Made by a program: the position numbers and the translations under genes. Positions 2,376 through 54,685 of a stretch of DNA of 64,000 bases are shown piece by piece. A model generated the notes under the pieces. It saw only the letters and a program-made list of their open reading frames with translations, made no database searches and was not told where the DNA came from. This DNA is from Zygnema circumcarinatum SAG 698-1b (Eukaryota > Plantae > Zygnematophyceae). The stretch lies in assembly GCA_037447605.1 (NCBI GenBank), contig CM074814.1, positions 434,001 through 498,000 on the forward strand, written 5' to 3'. Each line of letters starts with the position of its first letter. Within the stretch, counting starts at the first letter, position 1.

Positions 2376-5300
2376 TCAGCAAGCATGCATCACAGACTGT
2401 AGATTGCAACTCAGTTTAGTACCCCAAACTCTCGCCCTCTCTCCCTCTCCTCCCCCTCTCCCCCTCTCCTCCCTCTCTCCCTCTCCTCCCTCTCCTCGCT
2501 CCCTCGCTCCCTCTCTCCCTCTCTCCCTCTCGCCTTCCTCGCTCCCTCCCTCGCTCCCTCTCTCCCTCCCTCTCTCCCTCTCTCCCTCTCTCCCTCTCTC
2601 CCTCTCTCCGTCTCACCCCCCCTCCCTCTCTCCCTCACTCTTCTTTATCATCTCAAAATCCTCTTCGCACAATGGAGGGAGGGGGGCGGGAGAGGGAGGG
2701 AGAGGGAAGGAAGGAGGGAGAAGGGGAAATGATGAAATAACTCACAGATGCCTCCGGACTTTGCAATAATTCCTTTCTCGGCTTCCACATGATGATGGTC
2801 TCATCGCTACTTCCGGACCATACTCCACTCCCATTCGGAGCCAACGCGAGAGTGCGAACCCAATGACTGTGTCCCTTCAAAACTGCCACACACTTTCCTT
2901 CCTCCCAAGGACCCTTCCAAGCCCTAATGGTCTGGTCATGACCTGCAGACCAAAGGACCCCATCTTCATCCAAAGCAAGAGCTCTAATGCAGTTGGTATG
3001 CCCCTCCATTACAGAAATAAGTTTCCCTTCAAGAGTCCAACACATCACCTTCTCTTCTCCTCCACCCGACCACACATAGTCCTTTGCAATTAGGGCCCTA
3101 GATGACCCCGGATGACCCACTATTGTCCTTATACAAGACCTGTTTTTCCAACATTTTATGTCTCCATCTGCAGCAGCCGACCAAATTTGGCCCTTGATGT
3201 CTTCACAAAGAGCATGAATTGGGGCTTTATGACCCGCTTTTCCTGTTGGAGAAATCCAAGTGTTTGTTATTGAATACCCATCTGAGACCCACTCTTTGAT
3301 CACATTGTCATCTCCTCCCGAAAAGCAGCATCCTTCAGAAACCACTAGTAGAGTTGTTATAGCATGTCTGTGAGCGTTCGCATGTATGACTAAAGTTTCA
3401 TTGGAATGGTGATCGATCAACATCATTTTGCCATCTATGCAGGCCACCCAAAGCCATCCCTTTTTATCGAAAGCGAGAGATTTTATGGTTTCATGCTCCT
3501 CTCCCAATGTGAATATACACTCTTCTCCTCTCCATCGAGAGAGATTTCGGCCCCCTGTCCAGACAGTTCCGTCAGAGCCCACCGCTAAACTGAACACAGG
3601 GAAATGGCAACTGATTTCCATGGCTGCCTCCATGGAAAGAAGATGCTCCTCCGGATCAACCTGTGCAGAATTTTTACAAACTTTTAGATTATAGAAACAA
3701 ATTTCAACGTCCAAAGGAAGCGATTAGAGAGCACGGACACGAAATTTCGTGATTTAAACTAATCTGCAAAACATGCATTATAATTATGCAAACATAGCAA
3801 GGAAGAAAAACAGAAATTGCAGCATAAATAGTACGAAAAAGAGTTAAAGCTTACCTTTTCCTGCTTGAAAAGACCTGCCTTTGCCTCTTCTTTCAGTCTG
3901 AGCTCCATTCTCAGTTTCTCCATCTCGTCATGGAGAGTCTCTATCAACTGCTCCTGCTTGTCCATTGCATTTTTTTGGGCCAAATAAAGCGTAGCAAAGA
4001 ACCCAACTTGCGTCGGAATTCGCGTGTTCCGAATTGCATGCTCCGTCTTCTCTTTTGAGAGCTTCAAAGGGTCCAAATTCTCACATAGAAGGAGCCGGTC
4101 CTTCTCATCCACTCCCTTATCTCTTTCCAAAAAGGCATCAATCGCATCATACATTCTATTGCAGGTTGCTCGAGCTGAACTTGGAAAAGCTTCAACTAAT
4201 CTCTGAAAATCATGAATTTGAATAGTTTCCGATTCAGTACTTGCCCAAAGGAGATAGCTGTCCACCAAATCTCCTACAGAGAGATTCTCTTCTGAAGGAA
4301 ATTTGCTCTTTTCCTGCTTCAAGAAAGTTGAATATTGTCTTATGATAGAGAGTACAGTCTCCGCTTCCAACACCTTCAAGTCATCTAAAGACATCCTATG
4401 CAAGTCTTTTGTTAAACATGTCTCCAGTTCAGCTTCATAGGAGTCGAGTTTTAGGACATGGCAGAGCTTCAATAGAGTCACTTTGTAAGCAAGAGTAGGA
4501 ATCTGTCCCATTAATCCTTTGAATTTGTCTCCAGAAAGATCCGCCGCGCTTACTAGGTATTCCACAATTGCTTGAATATTGCATCTTCTGAAATCTTCAA
4601 TGAGGGAACTTTCCTTTCCTTTGAGTTCATTGGGCTCTATTTGAAGGAGCCACATATGGTTTTTCGCAGCAAGGGCATTCCCTGCAACTACAAAAGCCAA
4701 TTTTCTGGTTTGAAATTCGTGCAGAACGCCTTGTAAGAGACCCAAAGGCAAATCTATAAGCTTGTTGAATAAGAATACGGATTCTTCGACTTTTGAGGAA
4801 TCTTCTTGAAGCTGTGAGGCATGGTCTGAAAACAAGCAAAACAGGACCAGAAATGTTAGAAGATTAGAAAATTCCCAAAGAAAGAGAGACAGAAGAGGGA
4901 GAGGGAGAGAGCAGGGGAGTGCGGTAGATGAGGAAAGAAGGCGAGTGGGGAATGGAGAGGGGGAGAGGAGAGGGAGAGTGGAAAGAGCGAAAGGGTGTGG
5001 TGGGAGAGGTAGACTGAAGCAAACAGATGCAATAAAGAGAGAGAGTGAGAGAGAGAGGGAGAGAGGGAGAGAGGGAGAAAGAGGGAGAGCTACCTGCCAC
5101 AACTTCCTGGCACTTTTCCAGTACTTTAGCACTCGAATCATTCTCAAGCAGCGCAATTTCGGATCCTTGGAGTAAAGAGAGAGCATTCTTCCAATCGGAA
5201 TAAAAAAATTCTCTGAAAACCTTTTTGCAATACTCAATGAGGTTATTCGAAGACTGGTCCTCCGTCATTAAGAGATGCTCTGCTGACAGCAGCACCTGTA

Positions 5301-45627: not shown

Positions 45628-48600
45628 TCATCCAATCTCCCCAAAAAGCTCGCGGTCTGCAATTCTTCGAAACAGAAGGCGGAGTGACCAAAACCCGAAA
45701 AGAAAGGTCTGTGCGGCCCATTCCCATGCATTTTCTGGTTCCGTTTTCCGTGCAACAGCAAACGCAACTGCCGCCTCAAACGCATGGATCGCGACTGCAG
45801 TCCACCACACCATTTGGAGTCCCTCCATAGAAAAGAAAATTATAATCCCGAGCTCTCTCACTACTTCAAAGGGACCCATTAGGGGAGGGGGAAGATATGC
45901 TGAAAAAAAGGTCAAAAGGAGCCCAATTGGAATTAAAATCTGGGCAGCCAATCCCGGGCGAGATACAGATGTCCATTTTTTGGTCCTCCAACAAGCGACC
46001 ATTTGCCTCATCGCCTCCTTGGGCTCCACTATGGGAGAGAAGCCGAGCTCGCGGGAGGCTTTGGAGATGGAGAAGTAGTGGTTTGTGCCCATCTGGGGGG
46101 GAGGGCGAGAGGTTAGGGAGGAGAGAGGGGGAGGGTGGGCGGGAGGGGTGAGGGAGGGAGGGAGGGAGGAAGGGAGGGGGGGAGGGGGGGGAGGAAGGAG
46201 GGGAGGGAGGGAGGGGGAAGGGAGGGGGAAGAGATGGGGAAGGGAGGGGGAAGGGAGGGGGAAGAGATGGGGAGGGAGGGGGAAAGGGAGGTACAGGAAA
46301 GAAGGGAGGAGTGAGGAGGGAGGGAGGGGGGAAGGGAGGGGGGAAGGGAGGGGGGAAGGGAGGGAGGGAGGTACAGGAAAGAAGGGAGGAGTGAGGAGGG
46401 GGAGGGGGAAGGGAGGGGGAAGAGATGGGGAAGGGAGGGGGAAGGGAGGGGGAAGGGAGGGGGAAGGGAGGGGGAAGGAAGGGGGAAGGGAGGGAGGGAG
46501 GTACAGGAAAGAAGGGAGGAGTGAGAAAGGATGGAGGGGGGGATGAAGATCTTAAGGGGTTTGAGAGAAAATTACGAAACCAACAGGACGAAAACGGGAG
46601 AGATAGAGAGCAAGAGAGAGGGAGGGGAGAGAGCGAGAGAGAGTGGGACAGGGACCGGGACAGGGACAGGGAGAGGAGGGGAGAGGGAGAAGGAGAGAGA
46701 GGGAGTGAGAGAGAGAGAGAGGGAGGAAGTTTCTCTAATGCCTAACTGCCTTTCTCACCATGTACACATCCGCTGGGAGAAAGAGCGGCTCCGGAATCCA
46801 CCATTGGTCGAGCGATGGATAAAAAAATCGATAAATTCTGTCGATTATTTGGGCAAACTGTAACATGGTTTTTGTGGAAATTCGTCGCTCGGGAAATTGG
46901 AAATCATGAGCTTCAACGATGGGCTTCAAAAATTCAAAACTATTCACAGGGGCACCTGGAAAAGTTTCCCAAAAAAAAAAAATAGAGAGACGAGGATAAC
47001 GGATAGGATTTTAGGGTTTCTGGATTTTTGGTGTATGGAACTTGTGGGTTTTTTGGTTTTTAGGGTTTATAAGTTTGTAGGGTTTTAGGCTTTCTTGGGT
47101 TCAGGGAGATTTTTCACAATTCTTACCATCAGAGATGAAGTAGACTTGCCCAGCCGCTACTCCCCTCTCCCTCTCTTCCACGCCTTTCCCCCTCTCTCTC
47201 GCCTCTCCCTCGTCCTTCCCCTCTCCCTCTCTTACTCCCTCTCCCTCACTTCTACTCTCCCTCCGAGCCTCCCTCACTTCTCCCCTTGCCCCTTGATACT
47301 GATCTCCTTCCCCTCCCTCCACTCTTCTCTCCCTCTCTCTCCCCCCTCCTGAACCCAAACCCTCCACTTTCTCTGAGGGCAGGCCCATAACTGCCAAAAT
47401 TTCTGCGTGAACAAAATTTTCCACATGGAGCCAGTCCATCAAATCTTCTTCTTTTCCAAATTTTACGAAGAAAATTCCCCATTCGAAAATTTTCATAATT
47501 CGCGGAAAATACCGTTCCTCCCCCGGACCGTAAATTGCAGCGGGACGGAGGACACATGTGTGCATTCGTCCGTTTATCCTGCGTTAAAAAAAAAAAAAGC
47601 AGGGGCTCTGAATTGAATCTAATTTGAGAATTCAAGTGTAAGAAAAAAGGACAAGGACCTTTGGATACCTATTTTTAGAATATGTTTAAAAAATAGGTAT
47701 CAAAAAGTGCACCTTGATTACGAGTTATGAAATGTGAAAATTAGACATGGAAATAAGCTACCGAGGATGGAAAATTCGACAAATTTGAGACATCTAAACG
47801 TGCGGTAAACCGGGATGGCTATGGAGAGAGAGAGGAGACCCGGATAACTCGAGGGAGAGAGAGTATACGCGAATGTGTGGGAGAGAGAGGGAGGGAGAGA
47901 GGGAGGGAGAGAGAGAGGGAGAGAGAGAGTAGGAGAGAGGGCAATGAATAGAGAGGGCGAGAGAGGGCGAGAGGCGTGAGAGAGTGGGAGAGGGCGAGAG
48001 AGGGAGAGAGAGAGAGAGGGGGGGAGAGGGAGATCCATACCCATTTCTCCACCGCATCCCATTGTACTTCAAAACCACTTGTTCTGCGAGAGCTTTACTC
48101 CTCCCATATGCCTCCGCGGGACGCCCCCCCCCCCAATACCCCATTTTCTCGTCCCCATTCTCAATTTCTTGGCCCCCAAAAACGGTTCTATATGTGCTCG
48201 TAAATACAAACCGAGAAATTCCGAACTTGAGACTCTCTTCAAGGAGACAGACAGTTCCGTTGATGTTCACGGAATCTATGCTCGCAGTTTGGAGGGACTT
48301 CTTCCCCGAGGCTCCAACTGAGGCCACATGGAACACGCCGTCCGCTCCGTTGAGGGCAGTTGAGAGGTCCGTTGAACGGCGGATATCGCCTGGTTCAGAG
48401 GTTCAGTTTCACGGATTCAATCATCAGTTTAACGGATTCAATGATCAGTTTAACGGAGTCAATCATCAGTTTAACTGTTTCAATCATCAGTTTAATGGAT
48501 TCAATCATAATTTCTTAAATTTCTAAAAAAAAGTTGTGTTTGCGTTAGACCTTCGATGAGAACGATCCGAGGAATGGTTTGGAGCTCTTTTGCTTTCTCG

Positions 48601-49133
48601 ATTCGCCGATCGAAGCAGCGGACTTCTGCAGCTCCTCTGCAGTTTCAATTTAACGGAATCAGTTGAAAAAGACCACATAGGAACAGACCTCCCAAAACCC
48701 TAAAACCCTAAATCTCTAAAACCCAAAATCCAAAAAGCCCCAAATTCTAAAACTCGAAAAATCCAAGTTTTAAAAAAATGCGTTAAGAAGCCCATACCCT
48801 TCACAACTCCAAATTGTCTGCCACCCTCAAAACCTTAAACCCTAAAAGCTAAACCCTAAACCCAAATTTCCACCTTTACCAATTCTCTGCAAAGCTGCCT
48901 TACAAATTTCCAAAACACCAAAACCGACAAAAAAAAATTATTATCTTCCGAAACTCTAATACCCCAGACTTCAAAACCCGAAACCCTAACCATAAACCTT
49001 AATCTTAAACCCTAAGCCCTAATTTTCACCTTTCTATTAGTTCTCGGCAGAGCCGCCGCCCTTCATAGCCCGCCCCGCCAGTAACGACAAAAACAAAGCC
49101 CTCCACGCCTTCCGTGCTGACAAGTGTCACCAT
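45628..49133 (-). CDS. 3-beta-hydroxysteroid dehydrogenase/SDR42E1-like extended SDR (At2g33630-like) with a C-terminal membrane domain
   Basis: Rossmann motif VVTGGAGYEG, GADGVFHVAS, VNINGT, catalytic YGRSK, CVLRPAAIYGPGEER, DWLHVEN, AAGQVYFISDG, PLFLPADVYM|GTNHYFSISKASRELGF, and C-terminal AIHAFEAA..WAAQTFLFGFWSLRLL. Confidence 0.9.
48404..48508 (+). repeat. 21-bp minisatellite, 5 copies, intronic
   Basis: Unit CAGTTTAACGGATTCAATCAT with 1-3 substitutions per copy, head to tail with no spacers. Confidence 0.9.
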
Positions 49134-49545: not shown

Positions 49546-50056
49546 ACTTCTTTTTCCCCCTCTCTCTTTTTCTCTCTCTCGCTCGCGCGCGCGCATTGGT
49601 AACTACGCTTTTCCATCAGTCTTTCCCCATCTTTCATTATCTTTCCCTTCCTCCCTCTACCTTTCTCCCTCCCTCACTCCCGTCCTCGCTTTCTCTTCCT
49701 CCGTCCTCTCTCCCTCCCTCCCTTCCTCCCGCCTCTCTCCCTTCCTCGCTCCTCTTGCCCTCCCTCTCTCGCTTCCTCCGCCCTCTATCCCTCCCCNNNN
49801 NNNNNNCCTCCCTCCCTCCCCTCGCCCTTTCTTCCTCGTTCCCTCCTCTCCGTTTCCTGAAAGGCCATCCCCATCAAATCCTGAAGCTCTGAGTACCCAA
49901 CACTTCCCTGAAATACTGAACCTGCTACTGAAGGAACCCTAAAAAGCTTTTAGTAGAAGTGAAACCCTTCAACCCTCATGCTCTCCTATCCTACGGACCC
50001 TAGCCCTGAACCCTAACCCATCCATTCAGCGCATTGCACATGCAGCAACTTATAAA

Positions 50057-53000
50057 ATGTGGGTTTCTTGCGCAAGCCCAAACATCACATTCACTTTCAG
50101 CTCCCCTTTATCTCCTCTCTCCTCCTTTACAACCTTCAAACTGACTCCTCACTCACAAATAGCCTCAAAAAAATTAGGGTTAGGGTTGGCATTAGGGTTC
50201 GGGCGACGGTTAGGGTTACAGTTGGATTGCATCTCCTTGAACTCTTCTTCCAATGAAAACTCGTTCCTTCCCCATTTTATTTACATTTCTCATTCTCCAA
50301 AAGCTAAATCTCTGAACCCTAAAAGTACAAACCCTAAATCTTCCTTTCTCAAATGCCTAAATCTTCAACCACTGAACCCGAATATCCCGCATTCCGAAAC
50401 CCCAATTTTTGAATCCCGTAACCCTAGTTTTGTTTGTAAATCTCAAGCCCTGAACCCCACCTCCTCGGATCCTCCTCTTTTTAATTCTTCAAACTCATTG
50501 AATTCAGTGGAACCCTTCGCTAGTTCCATGGATTCCCACAGTTCCGTAAATCCCCCAAATAACCCTAGTTCCTTTATGTTAGTTGATTCCGTTGATTCCG
50601 TTAAGTCGTCTAAGTCAGTTAATTCTGTTTCCGAGTGGCGGTTTCAACGCGGAAAGTCGGCACTTACGGAATACTTAGCGCGTCCAGGACATTGGGATAT
50701 TAGAAAATTCGAATTAAATGACTTTATTAACTTTTTGGATAAATTTATAAAAGAAAAAAGAGCCAGCGATGATCTTTTCCAACAGCGCGAATATATTTCG
50801 GAATTGGAAAATCGACATTTGGAGGAACTTAAAATTTTGACAGTAAGCAAGTTTTTGGAGGCTTTTGGACTTTCTATAATTTTCAGATTTTTCTTTCCTT
50901 GGGGACATCCGAGTTTCTTTAAGTTTTTCGGCTTGTATACCTTATATTTTTTTCTTTCAATTTTTTTTTATGATTTTTTTTCGTTTTTTTATGTGAACAG
51001 GCTGCAATGGTAGAAGCTCAAGAAGCGTTTGACAGCTGTCAAGAGAAGAAAGTTATCGAAGCTCTCGGGCAGGAAGTGAAAAAGACAAAACTCGCTCTAG
51101 AGGGGCTCAAAAAGTTTTTGAATGCTGCCCGTGGAGAGTCAAATTCCCAAAAAAATTACAAACCAGTCCCTGTGAAGCAAAACTTGGAGCCCCTTCATGG
51201 AGAAGGAACCGTACTCGATAAATTACATGATGCTGATTTAACAAAATTTCAGCAAAATGGTAAATTTCTGGAGAATGTGACCCCATGCAAGGACGAGGTT
51301 GCTGACGTCAGCGACCCACAGAAGATTTTGTGGGCCCCACTTAGCCCTCTCCGAAGCTCAATTACGAAAGCCAGCAGTGGAAAAAATTTCAATTCTGGAC
51401 CGGATCCTGCGACCCAAAATATTTCCGAATCTTTGGAATCAAGAGACGCCCGCTTGGAAAAAAAAAAAGGGCTGAAAGGCGAAAATTTTGAGACTCTTAT
51501 TACTGCCCCTTCTCTTATTGGAGAGGCTGATTCAGTTGGCTCTGTGTTAGAAATTGGAACGGAACGGAACGGAACGGATTCGCCTCACATGGAACCGCAA
51601 GTTCTGGAGCGATTGGAGAGAAAAATTGAGAGCGCAGAATTAAAGGTGGCGAGATTGAAGGTGGCGGGGCCGGAACTGGAGAGGCTCTATGAGGAGATCT
51701 GTAACGCAACGCCTGCATGGAAAGTCAGTTTGCTCTCCCTCTACTCTCCCTCTCTCTCTCTCTCCCCCTCTCTCTCTCCTGCTCCCTCTCCTTCTCCCGC
51801 GGCCGCACGTGCGCTATCTCTCTCTCTCGCTGTCCCTCCCTAATCCGCCTTCTTGCTCCCTCATCGGCTTCTCTCTCCCTCGCGTTCTCAATCTCCCTGT
51901 CCCACTCCCCCTCCCACTCCCCGTTCCTCCCTCTCCCTCAACCTCCCCTCCCCACCTCCCCCACTCCCACCTCCACTCTTCTCCTTCTCGCTCCCCCGTC
52001 CCCTCTCCCACCCTCCCTCGCCCCATCTCCCCCTCCCTCTCCCTCCCCGTCCCCACTCTCTCCTCTGTCTTATGCCACCTTCTCCCCCTCGGCCCAATCT
52101 TCCTCTCCCTCTCCCACATCCTCTCTTCCCTCATCACCTCCCTCACACTCTTCCTCGTCGTTTCCTTCTTCCTTTCTCGTTCCTCTCCGAATCCCACTCC
52201 GTCTCCTGTTCCTGTTCCTCCTCTTCCACGCCCTCCCCCAACCTGCCCTCTTCCTCTTGTGTCCTTTTTTCTCTCCATCTCCTCCCTCTCCCTCTCCCTC
52301 TCCCTCTCCCTCTCCCTCCCCTCGCTCTCCCCCACATTGTTTCGCAGGCCCTCCTCGAAGCGGAAGCTGCAAAAGCCGCTTTTGAAGAGAAAATAGGGCT
52401 GACGTCAGCAAAGTTGGAGCTTCAGTCATTGACAAAGAGACATGGTCGAAACGCGACTTCGAGTGGAAGGTGCGAACTGCTTTCAACCTAAAACCCTAAA
52501 GCCCTAAAATCCTAAATCACCCTAAAAACCCTAAAAACCCTAAAACACCCTAAACCCTAAATCCGAAAACCCTAAAACCCTAAAAATTCTAAAATCCGAA
52601 AAGCCCTCATTAATTCTTTTTTTTAAATGAACAAATGGTATCTTTTATGCTTTGAATCGTCAACCAATGATTTTGCAAAGGGCCTTAAACCCTACCTGTT
52701 CTGAAACGTTTAAACCTTCAACCTTCAACCTTTGACTTCTTTTTCAGAAAATTCGAAGATGTGTGCACCGACATGTTACGAGATGTGTTTGAGTCCAAAA
52801 AGAATTCAGACTCGAACAATGTCGCGGACGATGAAAGGGAGCGGACCGTGGTGAGTGCACACGTGGCGGAATGCTGCGATTTGATTGGCTGTCGTTTAGT
52901 GTGTACTCGTTCTGAAACTTCCTTCACCGAAAGATTCGGAACCACAGAAACCCCAAAAATCCTAAAACCACAAAACCTTAAAACCCAAAACCTTGAAACC

Positions 53001-54685
53001 CTAAAATCCTGAAACCGCAAAACCCTAAAACCCTAAACTCTAAACCCCAAAAACCTTAAAACCCTCAACCATTAAAACCCAAAACCCCAAATAACCTAAA
53101 ACCCCAAAACCCTTAATCCCCAAAACCGCAAAACCACAAATCCCTAGAACCCCAAGACTCTAAAACCCTGACCCTAACGCCTAAAACCCTAAAACCCCAA
53201 AACCCTAAAACCCTAAACCCTAAACCCGCTTGGTGCAGGTCCTGTCCAACGTGACGCTAGGAATGGCGGCGGGCGAAATCGATAAAATGGTGAAAGGAAA
53301 AAAAAATCGCATGTCAAGTTTAAACCCCAAGTGTGACCGCACTAGTGATGACGTAACGCTGACGGGACATGAGAAGGAAAAAAGGTTCTGGAACATGGAA
53401 CGTGTGTGGAACTGATAACGAACTGAAACGAAACGGAACGTAAGCGAAACGAAATTGTACGCATGGAACAGCGTTGACTTTTCGAGCGTTGACTTTTTTA
53501 GCATTGACTTTTTGTGCGTTGTTTGTCCGTTGCAGGTGGTCCGTCCGGGCGGGAGTTGTACGGACGAGGTGGAGGTTTTGGCGCTTCTGGAATGCAAACG
53601 GAACGTGAACGATATCGGGCCCAGTTTTCTTCGCTACCAGGTACAGGGCTTAATTTTTTTTATTTTAATTTTAAAAATCAAACGAAATTTCAGTTTGACT
53701 CTAATTACACCTGAAATGAATTACTCTTTCTAATTAATTCCATTTTTGTTGTGAAAATTAACCAAATGAAAAAACAACAACATCGGGAAACATGGGATGG
53801 CAGATGATGTTGGGTTGGCTGACGGGTGACGTGGCGAGCTACGACGCTGCCACGTGGCGCACGCGGACGTACGTCAGCGGCCACTTTGACCGGCGCGCGG
53901 TCCACGTGGAGGCCAACGGCCAACGCTACGCCGTCACACGGAACTCGTTCCGCCGTTTTCGCCGCGACCAGAAGAGCGGATACTTCCTCGAAAACCTCAT
54001 GTTTGCGGTGAATGTCACGGCTCCAGGTCAGGAAAAACTCTCTCTCTCTCTCTCGTTCTCTCCCTCACCCGCTCTCACTCTCACTCCCTCCCTCTCGCTC
54101 CCTTGCCCGCTCTTTTTTCCTCTCTCTACCTCTCTCACTATTCTCCCGCTCCCACTCTACCTCTCTGTCGCTTCCTCTCTCTCCCCTCTCCGTTCCTCTC
54201 CCTGTACCGCCGCCCTCTCCCTCTTCCTCTCCCTCGCACTCTTCCTGTCCTCCCTGCCTCTCCCCCTCTCCCTCTTTCTCCCCCTCTCCCTCTCCCTCTC
54301 CCTCTCCCTCTCCCTCTCCTCTCCCTCTCCCTCTCTCTCTCCCCTCTCCCTCTCCCTCTCCCCCTCTCCCTCTCCCTCCCTCTCCCTCCTCCCTCCCTCC
54401 CACCCTCCCTCCCTCCTCCCTCCCTCCTCTCCCTCCCTCCCTCCAGGCTCCGTCCTCTCCGGGCTGGACTCCAAGTCCCTGAGCATCCTGGCCCGCCAGC
54501 TGTCCTCCAGCGCCCCCCTCCGCCGCCACGTGTCCTCCCGCCGCGGCCCCGCCCTGCTCGCGCTGCACCGCCGCCTCGCGGGGGATGACGTGGCGGCCGC
54601 CGACGTGCTCCGCCTCCTACCAGCCCTCCGAGGCGCTCAAATGTTTTTGCTGCACTATATTAGGAATTGTATGAATTATAATTAG
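50057..54685 (+). CDS. Uncharacterised coiled-coil protein with a predicted PD-(D/E)xK nuclease-fold domain (about 780 aa)
   Basis: Exons 50057-50842, 51001-51723, 52348-52469, 52748-52850, 53239-53289, 53536-53640, 53804-54026 and 54447-54685, all GT-AG and phase-consistent. The spliced core reads SGRKFEDVCTDML..VLSNVTLGMAAGEIDKMVVRP..VLALLECKRNVNDIG. The start may instead be ATG 50528, and the 3' end is uncertain. Confidence 0.7.
52488..53225 (+). repeat. Degenerate AAACCCT (plant telomere-type) repeats in introns
   Basis: Runs of AAAACCCTAAA/AAAACCCCAAA at 52488-52600 and 52950-53225, with similar tracts at 48690-49020, 47000-47100 (opposite strand) and 61430-61515. Confidence 0.75.

Follow-up and report, generated by a model that had tools for sequence, protein, structure and literature searches.

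A 64,000-nucleotide (nt) stretch of the Zygnema circumcarinatum SAG 698-1b genome (assembly GCA_037447605.1, contig CM074814.1, positions 434,001 to 498,000 of the forward strand), called here the window and used for all coordinates below, carries at 50057-54685 (+) a gene of eight exons whose product would end in a nuclease-like domain of the PD-(D/E)xK superfamily. We consider it, with a probability of about 0.7, a genuine and intact nuclear gene of a green-lineage alga, belonging to a family for which domain libraries hold no description. Such a domain had been proposed in an earlier note made from the letters of the window, and this proposal was supported by the residues invariant in the family and by the fold predicted for a homologue.

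The family is a well-defined addition to the superfamily. It has 66 or more diverse members, ten invariant residues and a near-perfect predicted structure, was missed by Pfam, NCBIfam and PADLOC, and shows an unusual spread over large-genome bacteria and green algae. For nuclease specialists the addition is incremental. It nevertheless offers a clean target for biochemistry and raises the question of what streptophyte algae have kept and land plants may have lost.

Exon structure of the gene at 50057-54685

The earlier note had assembled the domain from five small exons at 52348-54026 (+). These exons (52348-52469, 52748-52850, 53239-53289, 53536-53640 and 53804-54026) are real: each is bounded by AG and GT, they join in frame and all the motifs listed for them are present. 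Their translation contains SSG-R/KFED, with the Arg codon split across the junction, then VLSNVTLGMAAGEIDKM, VVRPGG...VLALLECKRN and MMLGWLTGD..YD..W..GHFDR. Read-through of any of the four introns between them leads to a stop within 7-53 codons. The proposed span was nevertheless too short, as the gene includes two exons upstream (50057-50842 and 51001-51723) and one downstream (54447-54685), the latter still encoding part of the nuclease-domain region. The whole gene, on the forward strand, thus comprises eight exons and seven GT..AG introns (junctions 50842/51001, 51723/52348, 52469/52748, 52850/53239, 53289/53536, 53640/53804 and 54026/54447). Its coding sequence is 2,352 nt long, corresponding to at most 783 amino acids (aa) with translation from the first ATG.

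The window yields 2,074 six-frame fragments, against all of which we ran a profile made from 66 full-length homologues (alignment A1). Matches at E < 1e-3 were limited to six of them, all on the forward strand and colinear with the profile: 50639-50836 (profile 5-68), 50998-51198 (70-136), 52345-52470 (150-191), 53233-53307 (218-242), 53536-53640 (237-271) and 53801-54010 (271-339). The seventh-ranked fragment had an E value of 0.6. The same colinear order was obtained by tblastn of four homologues against the region, and the exon pieces taken alone had profile coordinates that abut nearly seamlessly at the junctions (190/193, 236/237 and 271/274). The colinear profile and tblastn matches therefore validate, without joining of exons, a splice model that is predicted from homology and splice-site logic. 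As judged from these matches, the exon motifs lie far beyond chance. Together with segments 193-210 and 344-398 on exons 3 and 7, the profile segments listed above follow one another in order on exons 0-7, over the whole length of the family.

Exon 0 (50057-50842) begins at the first ATG, 50057, and ends at a GTAAGC donor; its real start is uncertain, and later in-frame ATGs occur at 50529 and 50577. The N-terminal helical domain of the family (here FxxFL..DxxFQQR) is matched only from about 50639 onward (profile 5-68, E = 4.7e-07 against the 2,074 fragments). The 194 codons ahead of this conserved part are of low complexity, Ser/Pro/Asn-rich and in part a telomere-like repeat in translation. 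Since a run of N at 49798-49807, some 250 nt before the first ATG, marks a gap in the assembly, the promoter and 5' end are incompletely assembled. Exon 1 (51001-51723) would encode a coiled-coil arm, about 130 aa longer than that of bacterial members; it was delimited by the profile match at 50998-51198, by tblastn with the homologues P0008 and P0004 (the latter being the bacterial member modelled below) and by its splice sites.

The nuclease core is entered in exon 2 (52348-52469), at the end of a long helix (..EKIGLT...KRHGRNATSSG plus two nt of the Arg codon; profile 150-191, E = 6.4e-06), with an invariant Gly at 52465-52467. Exon 3 (52748-52850) would form helix alpha-1 with K-F-E, the predicted catalytic Glu being at 52755-52757, followed by a variable acidic loop. 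This exon is short and divergent and scored only E = 0.15 alone; FE aligns with profile positions 193-194, and the exon is placed because the flanking exons and the phase fix its position. Exon 4 (53239-53289), a micro-exon of 51 nt, covers strand beta-1 (VLSNVTL) and the G-E-I-D with which beta-2 begins (profile 218-242, E = 2.1e-04); the Glu (53275-53277) and Asp (53281-53283) of this motif are invariant. The remainder of beta-2, a loop, beta-3 with E-C-K (Glu 53590-53592, Lys 53596-53598) and RNVNDIG at the start of helix alpha-2 are carried by exon 5 (53536-53640; profile 237-271, E = 3.1e-07).

Exon 6 (53804-54026) is the most conserved block of the family (LGWLTGD..YD..RT..GHFDR..H....SFRRF; profile 271-339, E = 1.1e-25), with the invariant Gly 53879-53881, Phe 53885-53887, His 53903-53905 and Phe 53948-53950. 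Exon 7 (54447-54685), which would encode a C-terminal helical subdomain and ends at a TAG stop (54683-54685), is divergent and matches the profile weakly (344-398), with ..DVLRL....A..FLL retained. A tblastn match with the Mesotaenium protein described below spans 54446-54508, and the exon was also compared with the C-terminus of the Chara protein.

Intron 7 (54027-54446, +) is a CT-rich microsatellite of 420 nt bounded by GT..AG. Its length is a multiple of three and it contains no in-frame stop. Its retention would insert about 140 Ser/Leu/Pro-rich residues with the frame kept, and would not truncate the protein. More generally, the region at 50-55 kb of the window is organised as is usual for eukaryotic genes, with short coding blocks between introns of CT microsatellites and plant-type telomere-like (CCCTAAA-like) arrays. 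Introns 3 and 4 (52487-52607 and 52947-53227) and 2 and 7 (51733-52323 and 54038-54444) are mainly degenerate CCCTAAA variants and CT microsatellites. Both types of repeat were also observed in nearby intergenic DNA (48680-49030 and 49550-49830).

Invariant residues and predicted fold of the family

Exon 6 (74 aa) was searched by phmmer against 1.84 billion representative proteins, which gave 98 matches at E <= 1e-3, mostly of about 400 aa. The best of these were just 54-58% identical, and the five top clusters looked up were singletons; the window gene's own protein was not found in the protein collections searched with this query. Searches for homologues with P0004 and A1 yielded only unnamed bacterial or metagenomic proteins, and no description of the family was found in literature searches. 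The 66 full-length members are 26-49% identical to the reference and share ten invariant columns (P0004 numbering): G181 and E185 (GxxFE), E221 and D223 (ExD), E243 and K245 (ExK), G285 and F287 (GHFD), H293 and F307. All ten residues are retained by the window gene. The claim that all its catalytic positions are intact was therefore confirmed, with KFE, GEID and ECK at the aligned positions and the residues of E/ExD/ExK invariant throughout the 66 members. The core-covering homologues with eukaryotic source labels (Pyramimonas, Clydonella) also retain the catalytic residues. In members of the family, a small N-terminal helical domain (motif FxxWL..FxQR) is followed by a long antiparallel coiled-coil arm, and a PD-(D/E)xK-fold domain of about 240 aa forms the C-terminal part.

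AlphaFold2, supplied with the family alignment, modelled the whole of the bacterial member P0004 (402 residues) with a predicted local distance difference test (pLDDT) of 96.6 and a predicted template-modelling score (pTM) of 0.89. The model shows the N-terminal helical domain, a helical arm (helices 59-200), strands 206-213, 222-229 and 237-245, and a helix 248-266, followed by further strands and C-terminal helices. The arm supports another claim of the earlier note, namely that long coiled coils precede the domain. A wide structure search with this 402-residue model was dominated by coiled-coil matches, and the domain was folded alone because these swamped the whole-protein search (P0004 residues 165-402; pLDDT 95.2, pTM 0.90). 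In the domain model, a helix (2-36), three strands (42-49, 58-65 and 73-81) and a second helix (84-102) follow one another, giving an alpha-beta-beta-beta-alpha core for the bacterial homologue. In the P0004 models the long helix carries the invariant Glu, strand 2 opens with ExD, and strand 3 closes with ExK before the next helix. This predicted placement is the canonical PD-(D/E)xK arrangement.

We then compared the domain model with 48,161 PDB representatives by an exhaustive aligner, without filtering. Nearly all of the top 50 were PD-(D/E)xK nucleases (Z 6.4-3.9). The highest scores were those of NucS 2vld (Z 6.4, root-mean-square deviation 3.9 Å, 103 residues aligned), BsaWI (5.7), PaqCI, AF1548 and BpuSI (5.6 each), SfsA and Shedu SduA (5.5 each), BsoBI (5.4), SgrAI (5.3) and Can1 (5.2), with MunI, PfoI, Bse634I, PspGI, NgoMIV, HamA, NucC, Cfr10I, FokI, McrC and EcoRI ranked lower. 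The restriction-endonuclease fold foreseen for the domain was thus recovered, both in the model of the homologue and in this search. The assignment is made from the uniformity of the match list together with the invariant catalytic motif, and not from any single match.

With Foldseek, neither the whole model nor the domain gave a match at E <= 1e-3 (all E > 0.03), and Rab GTPases were mixed among the nucleases. The Rab likeness was discarded, since it dropped to Z of about 2.5 upon re-alignment of 1,000 Foldseek candidates, where nucleases stayed on top. Structural neighbours in the ESM Atlas were clusters of Mrr_cat, SduA_C, PDDEXK_4 and RE_BanI, plus a Chlorophyta cluster; feature searches of the Atlas with exon 6 or P0004 returned weak, uninformative matches only.

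The best structural match of the family is the C-terminal catalytic domain of NucS/EndoMS (2vld, Z 6.4; 5gke, Z 5.8), which shares the alpha-beta-beta-beta-alpha core and likewise carries D...ExK on its second and third strands. However, the two sequences are only 12-14% identical and are not connected by any sequence model. The two-domain architecture of NucS was not found in the family: only the C-terminal domain of NucS (chain residues 126-233) aligns, and its N-terminal beta-barrel for DNA binding and dimerisation contrasts with the all-helical N-terminal half and coiled-coil arm of the family. In comparison with NucS, two further features are specific to the family, namely the GHFD/H/F block and the helical subdomain at the C-terminus. 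The fold is also shared with type II restriction endonucleases (BsaWI 4zsf, BsoBI 1dc1, PaqCI 8em1, BpuSI 3s1s, MunI 1d02 and SgrAI 7s8d), at Z 5.0-5.9 over 112-139 residues, and BsaWI was the first-ranked Foldseek match for the full-length model. Unlike type II systems, the six metagenomic family loci inspected by Pfam have no methyltransferase beside them, and eukaryotic members are single spliced genes. With structure scores this low, the protein cannot be assigned to any restriction-enzyme family.

The comparison with Mrr-, NERD- and YraN-like nucleases made in the earlier note holds for the fold and the order of motifs, since Mrr_cat (PF04471), NERD (PF08378) and YraN/UPF0102 likewise place a Glu on the helix, an Asp where strand 2 begins and ExK on the third strand. 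It does not hold for membership: none of PF04471, PF08378 and PF02021 was matched at E <= 10 by the 66 domain sequences. AF1548 (1y88) scored Z 5.6 against the family domain, the structural neighbours in the ESM Atlas include a Mrr_cat cluster (TM 0.61 when normalised by that row) and a NERD-bearing cluster was a weak neighbour in language-model features (0.86). Its C-terminal additions give the family domain about twice the length of Mrr_cat or YraN. Likewise, the PD-(D/E)xK effectors Shedu SduA (8ps4, Z 5.5; SduA_C cluster in the Atlas) and Hachiman HamA (8vxy/8vx9, Z 4.8-5.0) resemble the domain in structure. In contrast to them, the family had no PADLOC match beyond coiled-coil noise and no recurrent helicase or defence-island neighbours across the loci examined. 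A further parallel is DUF506, another PD-(D/E)xK family that is uncharacterised and occurs in photosynthetic eukaryotes (PMC8583954). DUF506 however has a Pfam model, which was not matched here, and is widespread in land plants, whereas algae and bacteria were the only sources in which we saw the present family.

Distribution and gene neighbourhood

Relatives are encoded in 52 of 185,579 species genomes. The bacterial hosts belong to Planctomycetota (Planctomycetaceae, Pirellulaceae, Gemmataceae, Brocadiia and Candidatus Uabimicrobium), Myxococcota (Archangium, Cystobacter) and Gemmatimonadota, with a few metagenome-assembled genomes labelled as other groups; Mal4_15510 of Maioricimonas rarisocia is one of the bacterial members. 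With 52 bacterial species the family is mainly bacterial, and the description of the protein as a eukaryotic nuclease had to be abandoned in so far as it implied a eukaryote-specific family. Members with eukaryotic labels come from Chara braunii (GBG86414.1, P0009), Mesotaenium endlicherianum (ME000243S03971, P0006), Pyramimonas parkeae (P0114), Pyramimonas sp. CCMP1952 and Prasinococcus capsulatus; a member from a Clydonella transcriptome is possibly a contaminant. No land-plant protein was present among the 30 of the 98 clusters whose sources were looked up, which leaves absence from land plants unproven. The other 68 clusters, taken without source look-up, are mostly bacterial-type proteins of about 400 aa, the rest being shorter fragments.

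The public models of the streptophyte proteins are incomplete. In the chimeric model of Chara, a hAT/DUF659 transposase interrupts the gene and most of the catalytic exons are skipped; this model retains the N-terminus and C-terminus of the family and an isolated 16-aa peptide, LSNVTLGMAvGEvDKM, nearly identical to the product of micro-exon 4 of the window and flanked by unrelated sequence. The Mesotaenium model starts with a spurious, repeat-derived N-terminus and covers no more of the family region than its C-terminal third. The catalytic core is therefore absent from the Mesotaenium model and reduced to the micro-exon peptide in that of Chara, because it is split into micro-exons between repeat-filled introns. 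This splitting would also make the gene invisible to domain-based surveys of algal genes for DNA metabolism or defence. The window gene, Chara and Mesotaenium have in common the derived LGWLTG and GLDS stretches, for which reason we regard the streptophyte genes as orthologues. Trees of single exons lacked the resolution to show whether the algal genes are monophyletic or when they entered the green lineage.

In the transcriptome-derived P. parkeae protein, ankyrin repeats (residues about 280-400) precede the family module (about 706-1191), a fusion not seen in bacteria.

We further clustered the open reading frames (ORFs) flanking the gene at 52 loci. The sole neighbour recurring across lineages was a gene for a pentapeptide-repeat protein with hydrophobic C-terminal segments, located directly upstream on the same strand at 13 of the loci (L009-L016, L025, L033, L048, L056 and L057, at about 3400-4990 in each). 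As judged from this gene order, the two may constitute a two-gene module, which we treat as a lead only. The pentapeptide-repeat gene was not found in the 64-kb window. DUF2293 and MazG neighbours were rejected as partners, their recurrence being lineage-local synteny only.

Taken together, these data allow a tentative scenario to which we give limited credence: a bacterial-type family, as found in Planctomycetota and Myxococcota, would have entered the green lineage early, gained introns and been kept only in algae (prasinophytes and streptophyte algae) and not in land plants. There it might serve in the maintenance of organelle genomes or in defence against viruses or transposons, and in bacteria it would work with a membrane-anchored pentapeptide-repeat partner.

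Proposed function, alternative readings and surrounding DNA

By analogy with the superfamily, for which the chemistry has been reviewed (PMC3424549), one or two Mg2+ ions would be held by four residues, namely the KFE Glu in helix alpha-1, the G-E-I-D Asp where beta-2 begins, and both the Glu and the Lys in the E-C-K of beta-3. This site would activate a water molecule and cut a phosphodiester bond in a nucleic acid, most likely DNA. The family-specific invariant block GHFD..H..SF might shape or line the substrate site, and the coiled-coil arm might act in oligomerisation or regulation. Catalysis, substrate and cellular role are thus proposed from the superfamily mechanism, what is directly supported being the structure of the gene, its membership of the family, the invariant residues and the fold modelled for the homologue.

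Several results weigh against a nuclease gene of this kind. Pfam gave no match for the exons (searched separately, and short), for 18 full-length homologues or for any of the 66 domain sequences (hmmscan, E <= 10), and NCBIfam and PADLOC gave only coiled-coil noise among family members. Sequence profile searches of the PDB returned only coiled-coil noise with A1 and nothing with the domain alignment (A2), and single exons, which are very short, had no match there. The modest Z scores (6.4 at most) and Foldseek E values above 0.03 show that the domain is distant from every solved nuclease. The fold was modelled on a bacterial homologue and not on the algal protein itself. Finally, a search of sequencing runs for this stretch returned none recorded as RNA; one run of unknown type held 0.41 of the words of the stretch, close to the exon share. 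As regards superfamily membership, no significant sequence match to a member family of CL0236 was obtained. This does not exclude membership, because the superfamily is known for families that can be linked by fold comparison only (PMC3424549). We conclude that the family is a distinct, unannotated branch of the PD-(D/E)xK superfamily.

The fold and the metal site could be present without cutting of DNA, the substrate being RNA or another phosphodiester, or the protein being a sensor or scaffold that only binds. The structural neighbours indeed have many activities (the mismatch-repair enzyme NucS, restriction enzymes, the effectors Can1/Can2/NucC that cyclic nucleotides activate, viral cap-snatching endonucleases and tRNA-splicing endonuclease), the invariant GHFD/H/F block has no mappable counterpart in known nucleases, and a membrane-anchored pentapeptide-repeat neighbour (13 of 52 loci) is untypical of DNA repair. 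We nevertheless consider this unlikely, as four canonical catalytic residues invariant over 66 diverged members are the usual signature of an active hydrolase. Superfamily members without activity usually lose their catalytic residues. Import of a DNA-cutting enzyme into the chloroplast or mitochondrion, to act on organelle DNA, is in our estimate doubtful. If ATG 50057 is the start, the first 60 residues include 15 Ser/Thr, 5 Lys/Arg and one acidic residue, a transit-peptide-like composition that bears out the Ser/Thr-rich, acid-poor N-terminus described in the earlier note. However, this start codon is only a presumed one, starts at 50529 or 50577 would give no such extension, and the 194 codons ahead of the conserved part are of low complexity and partly a telomere-like repeat, with the assembly gap only about 250 nt further upstream. 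Moreover, the Pyramimonas homologue has ankyrin repeats at its N-terminus instead.

Two other readings concern the gene itself. A decaying or silent pseudogene left by an old bacterial transfer, with residual motifs, appears very unlikely: the frame of 2,352 nt is intact over eight exons with seven canonical introns, and the ten family-invariant residues are all kept. In addition, the Chara and Mesotaenium orthologues share derived features with the window gene (LSNVTLGMA.GE.DKM, LGWLTG, GLDS), which therefore argues for long-term purifying selection, and one Pyramimonas homologue comes from a transcriptome. The lack of transcript evidence for the window gene would fit such decay, as would the absence of its protein from the searched collections (best exon 6 matches at 54-58% identity, five top clusters singletons), the divergent last exon and the microsatellite-filled introns. 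Bacterial contamination or a very recent transfer might be suspected since exon 6 is 53-58% identical to the nearest bacterial-type proteins compared to 50-52% to Mesotaenium and Chara, and since a tree places it among bacterial-type proteins. This tree however has only 67 columns and no resolving power, and Chara has the micro-exon peptide as an isolated block together with the common N- and C-terminal peculiarities. Contamination is effectively refuted by the intron structure: seven introns of spliceosomal type interrupt the gene, and they contain plant-type telomere-like repeats and CT repeats, as the rest of the window does. An intact algal gene for a PD-(D/E)xK nuclease-like protein thus remains our preferred reading.

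The surrounding DNA has several features of its own. At 38500-44000, a tract of several kb is made nearly entirely of C and T in degenerate (CCCCT)n-like units, with a GC content of 0.77-0.81, a GC skew of -0.87 to -0.96 and an AT skew of -0.65 to -0.79. Such extreme polypyrimidine/polypurine strand asymmetry could give rise to triplex or i-motif structures. Tandem units of about 24 nt (cagtttaacggattcaatcatcag-like) occupy 48390-48500, between the upstream gene and the nuclease-fold gene. On the reverse strand, an uninterrupted ORF of 617 aa at 61585-63438 has several hydrophobic segments in its C-terminal half and, as far as its sequence indicates, looks like a single-exon gene for a membrane protein.

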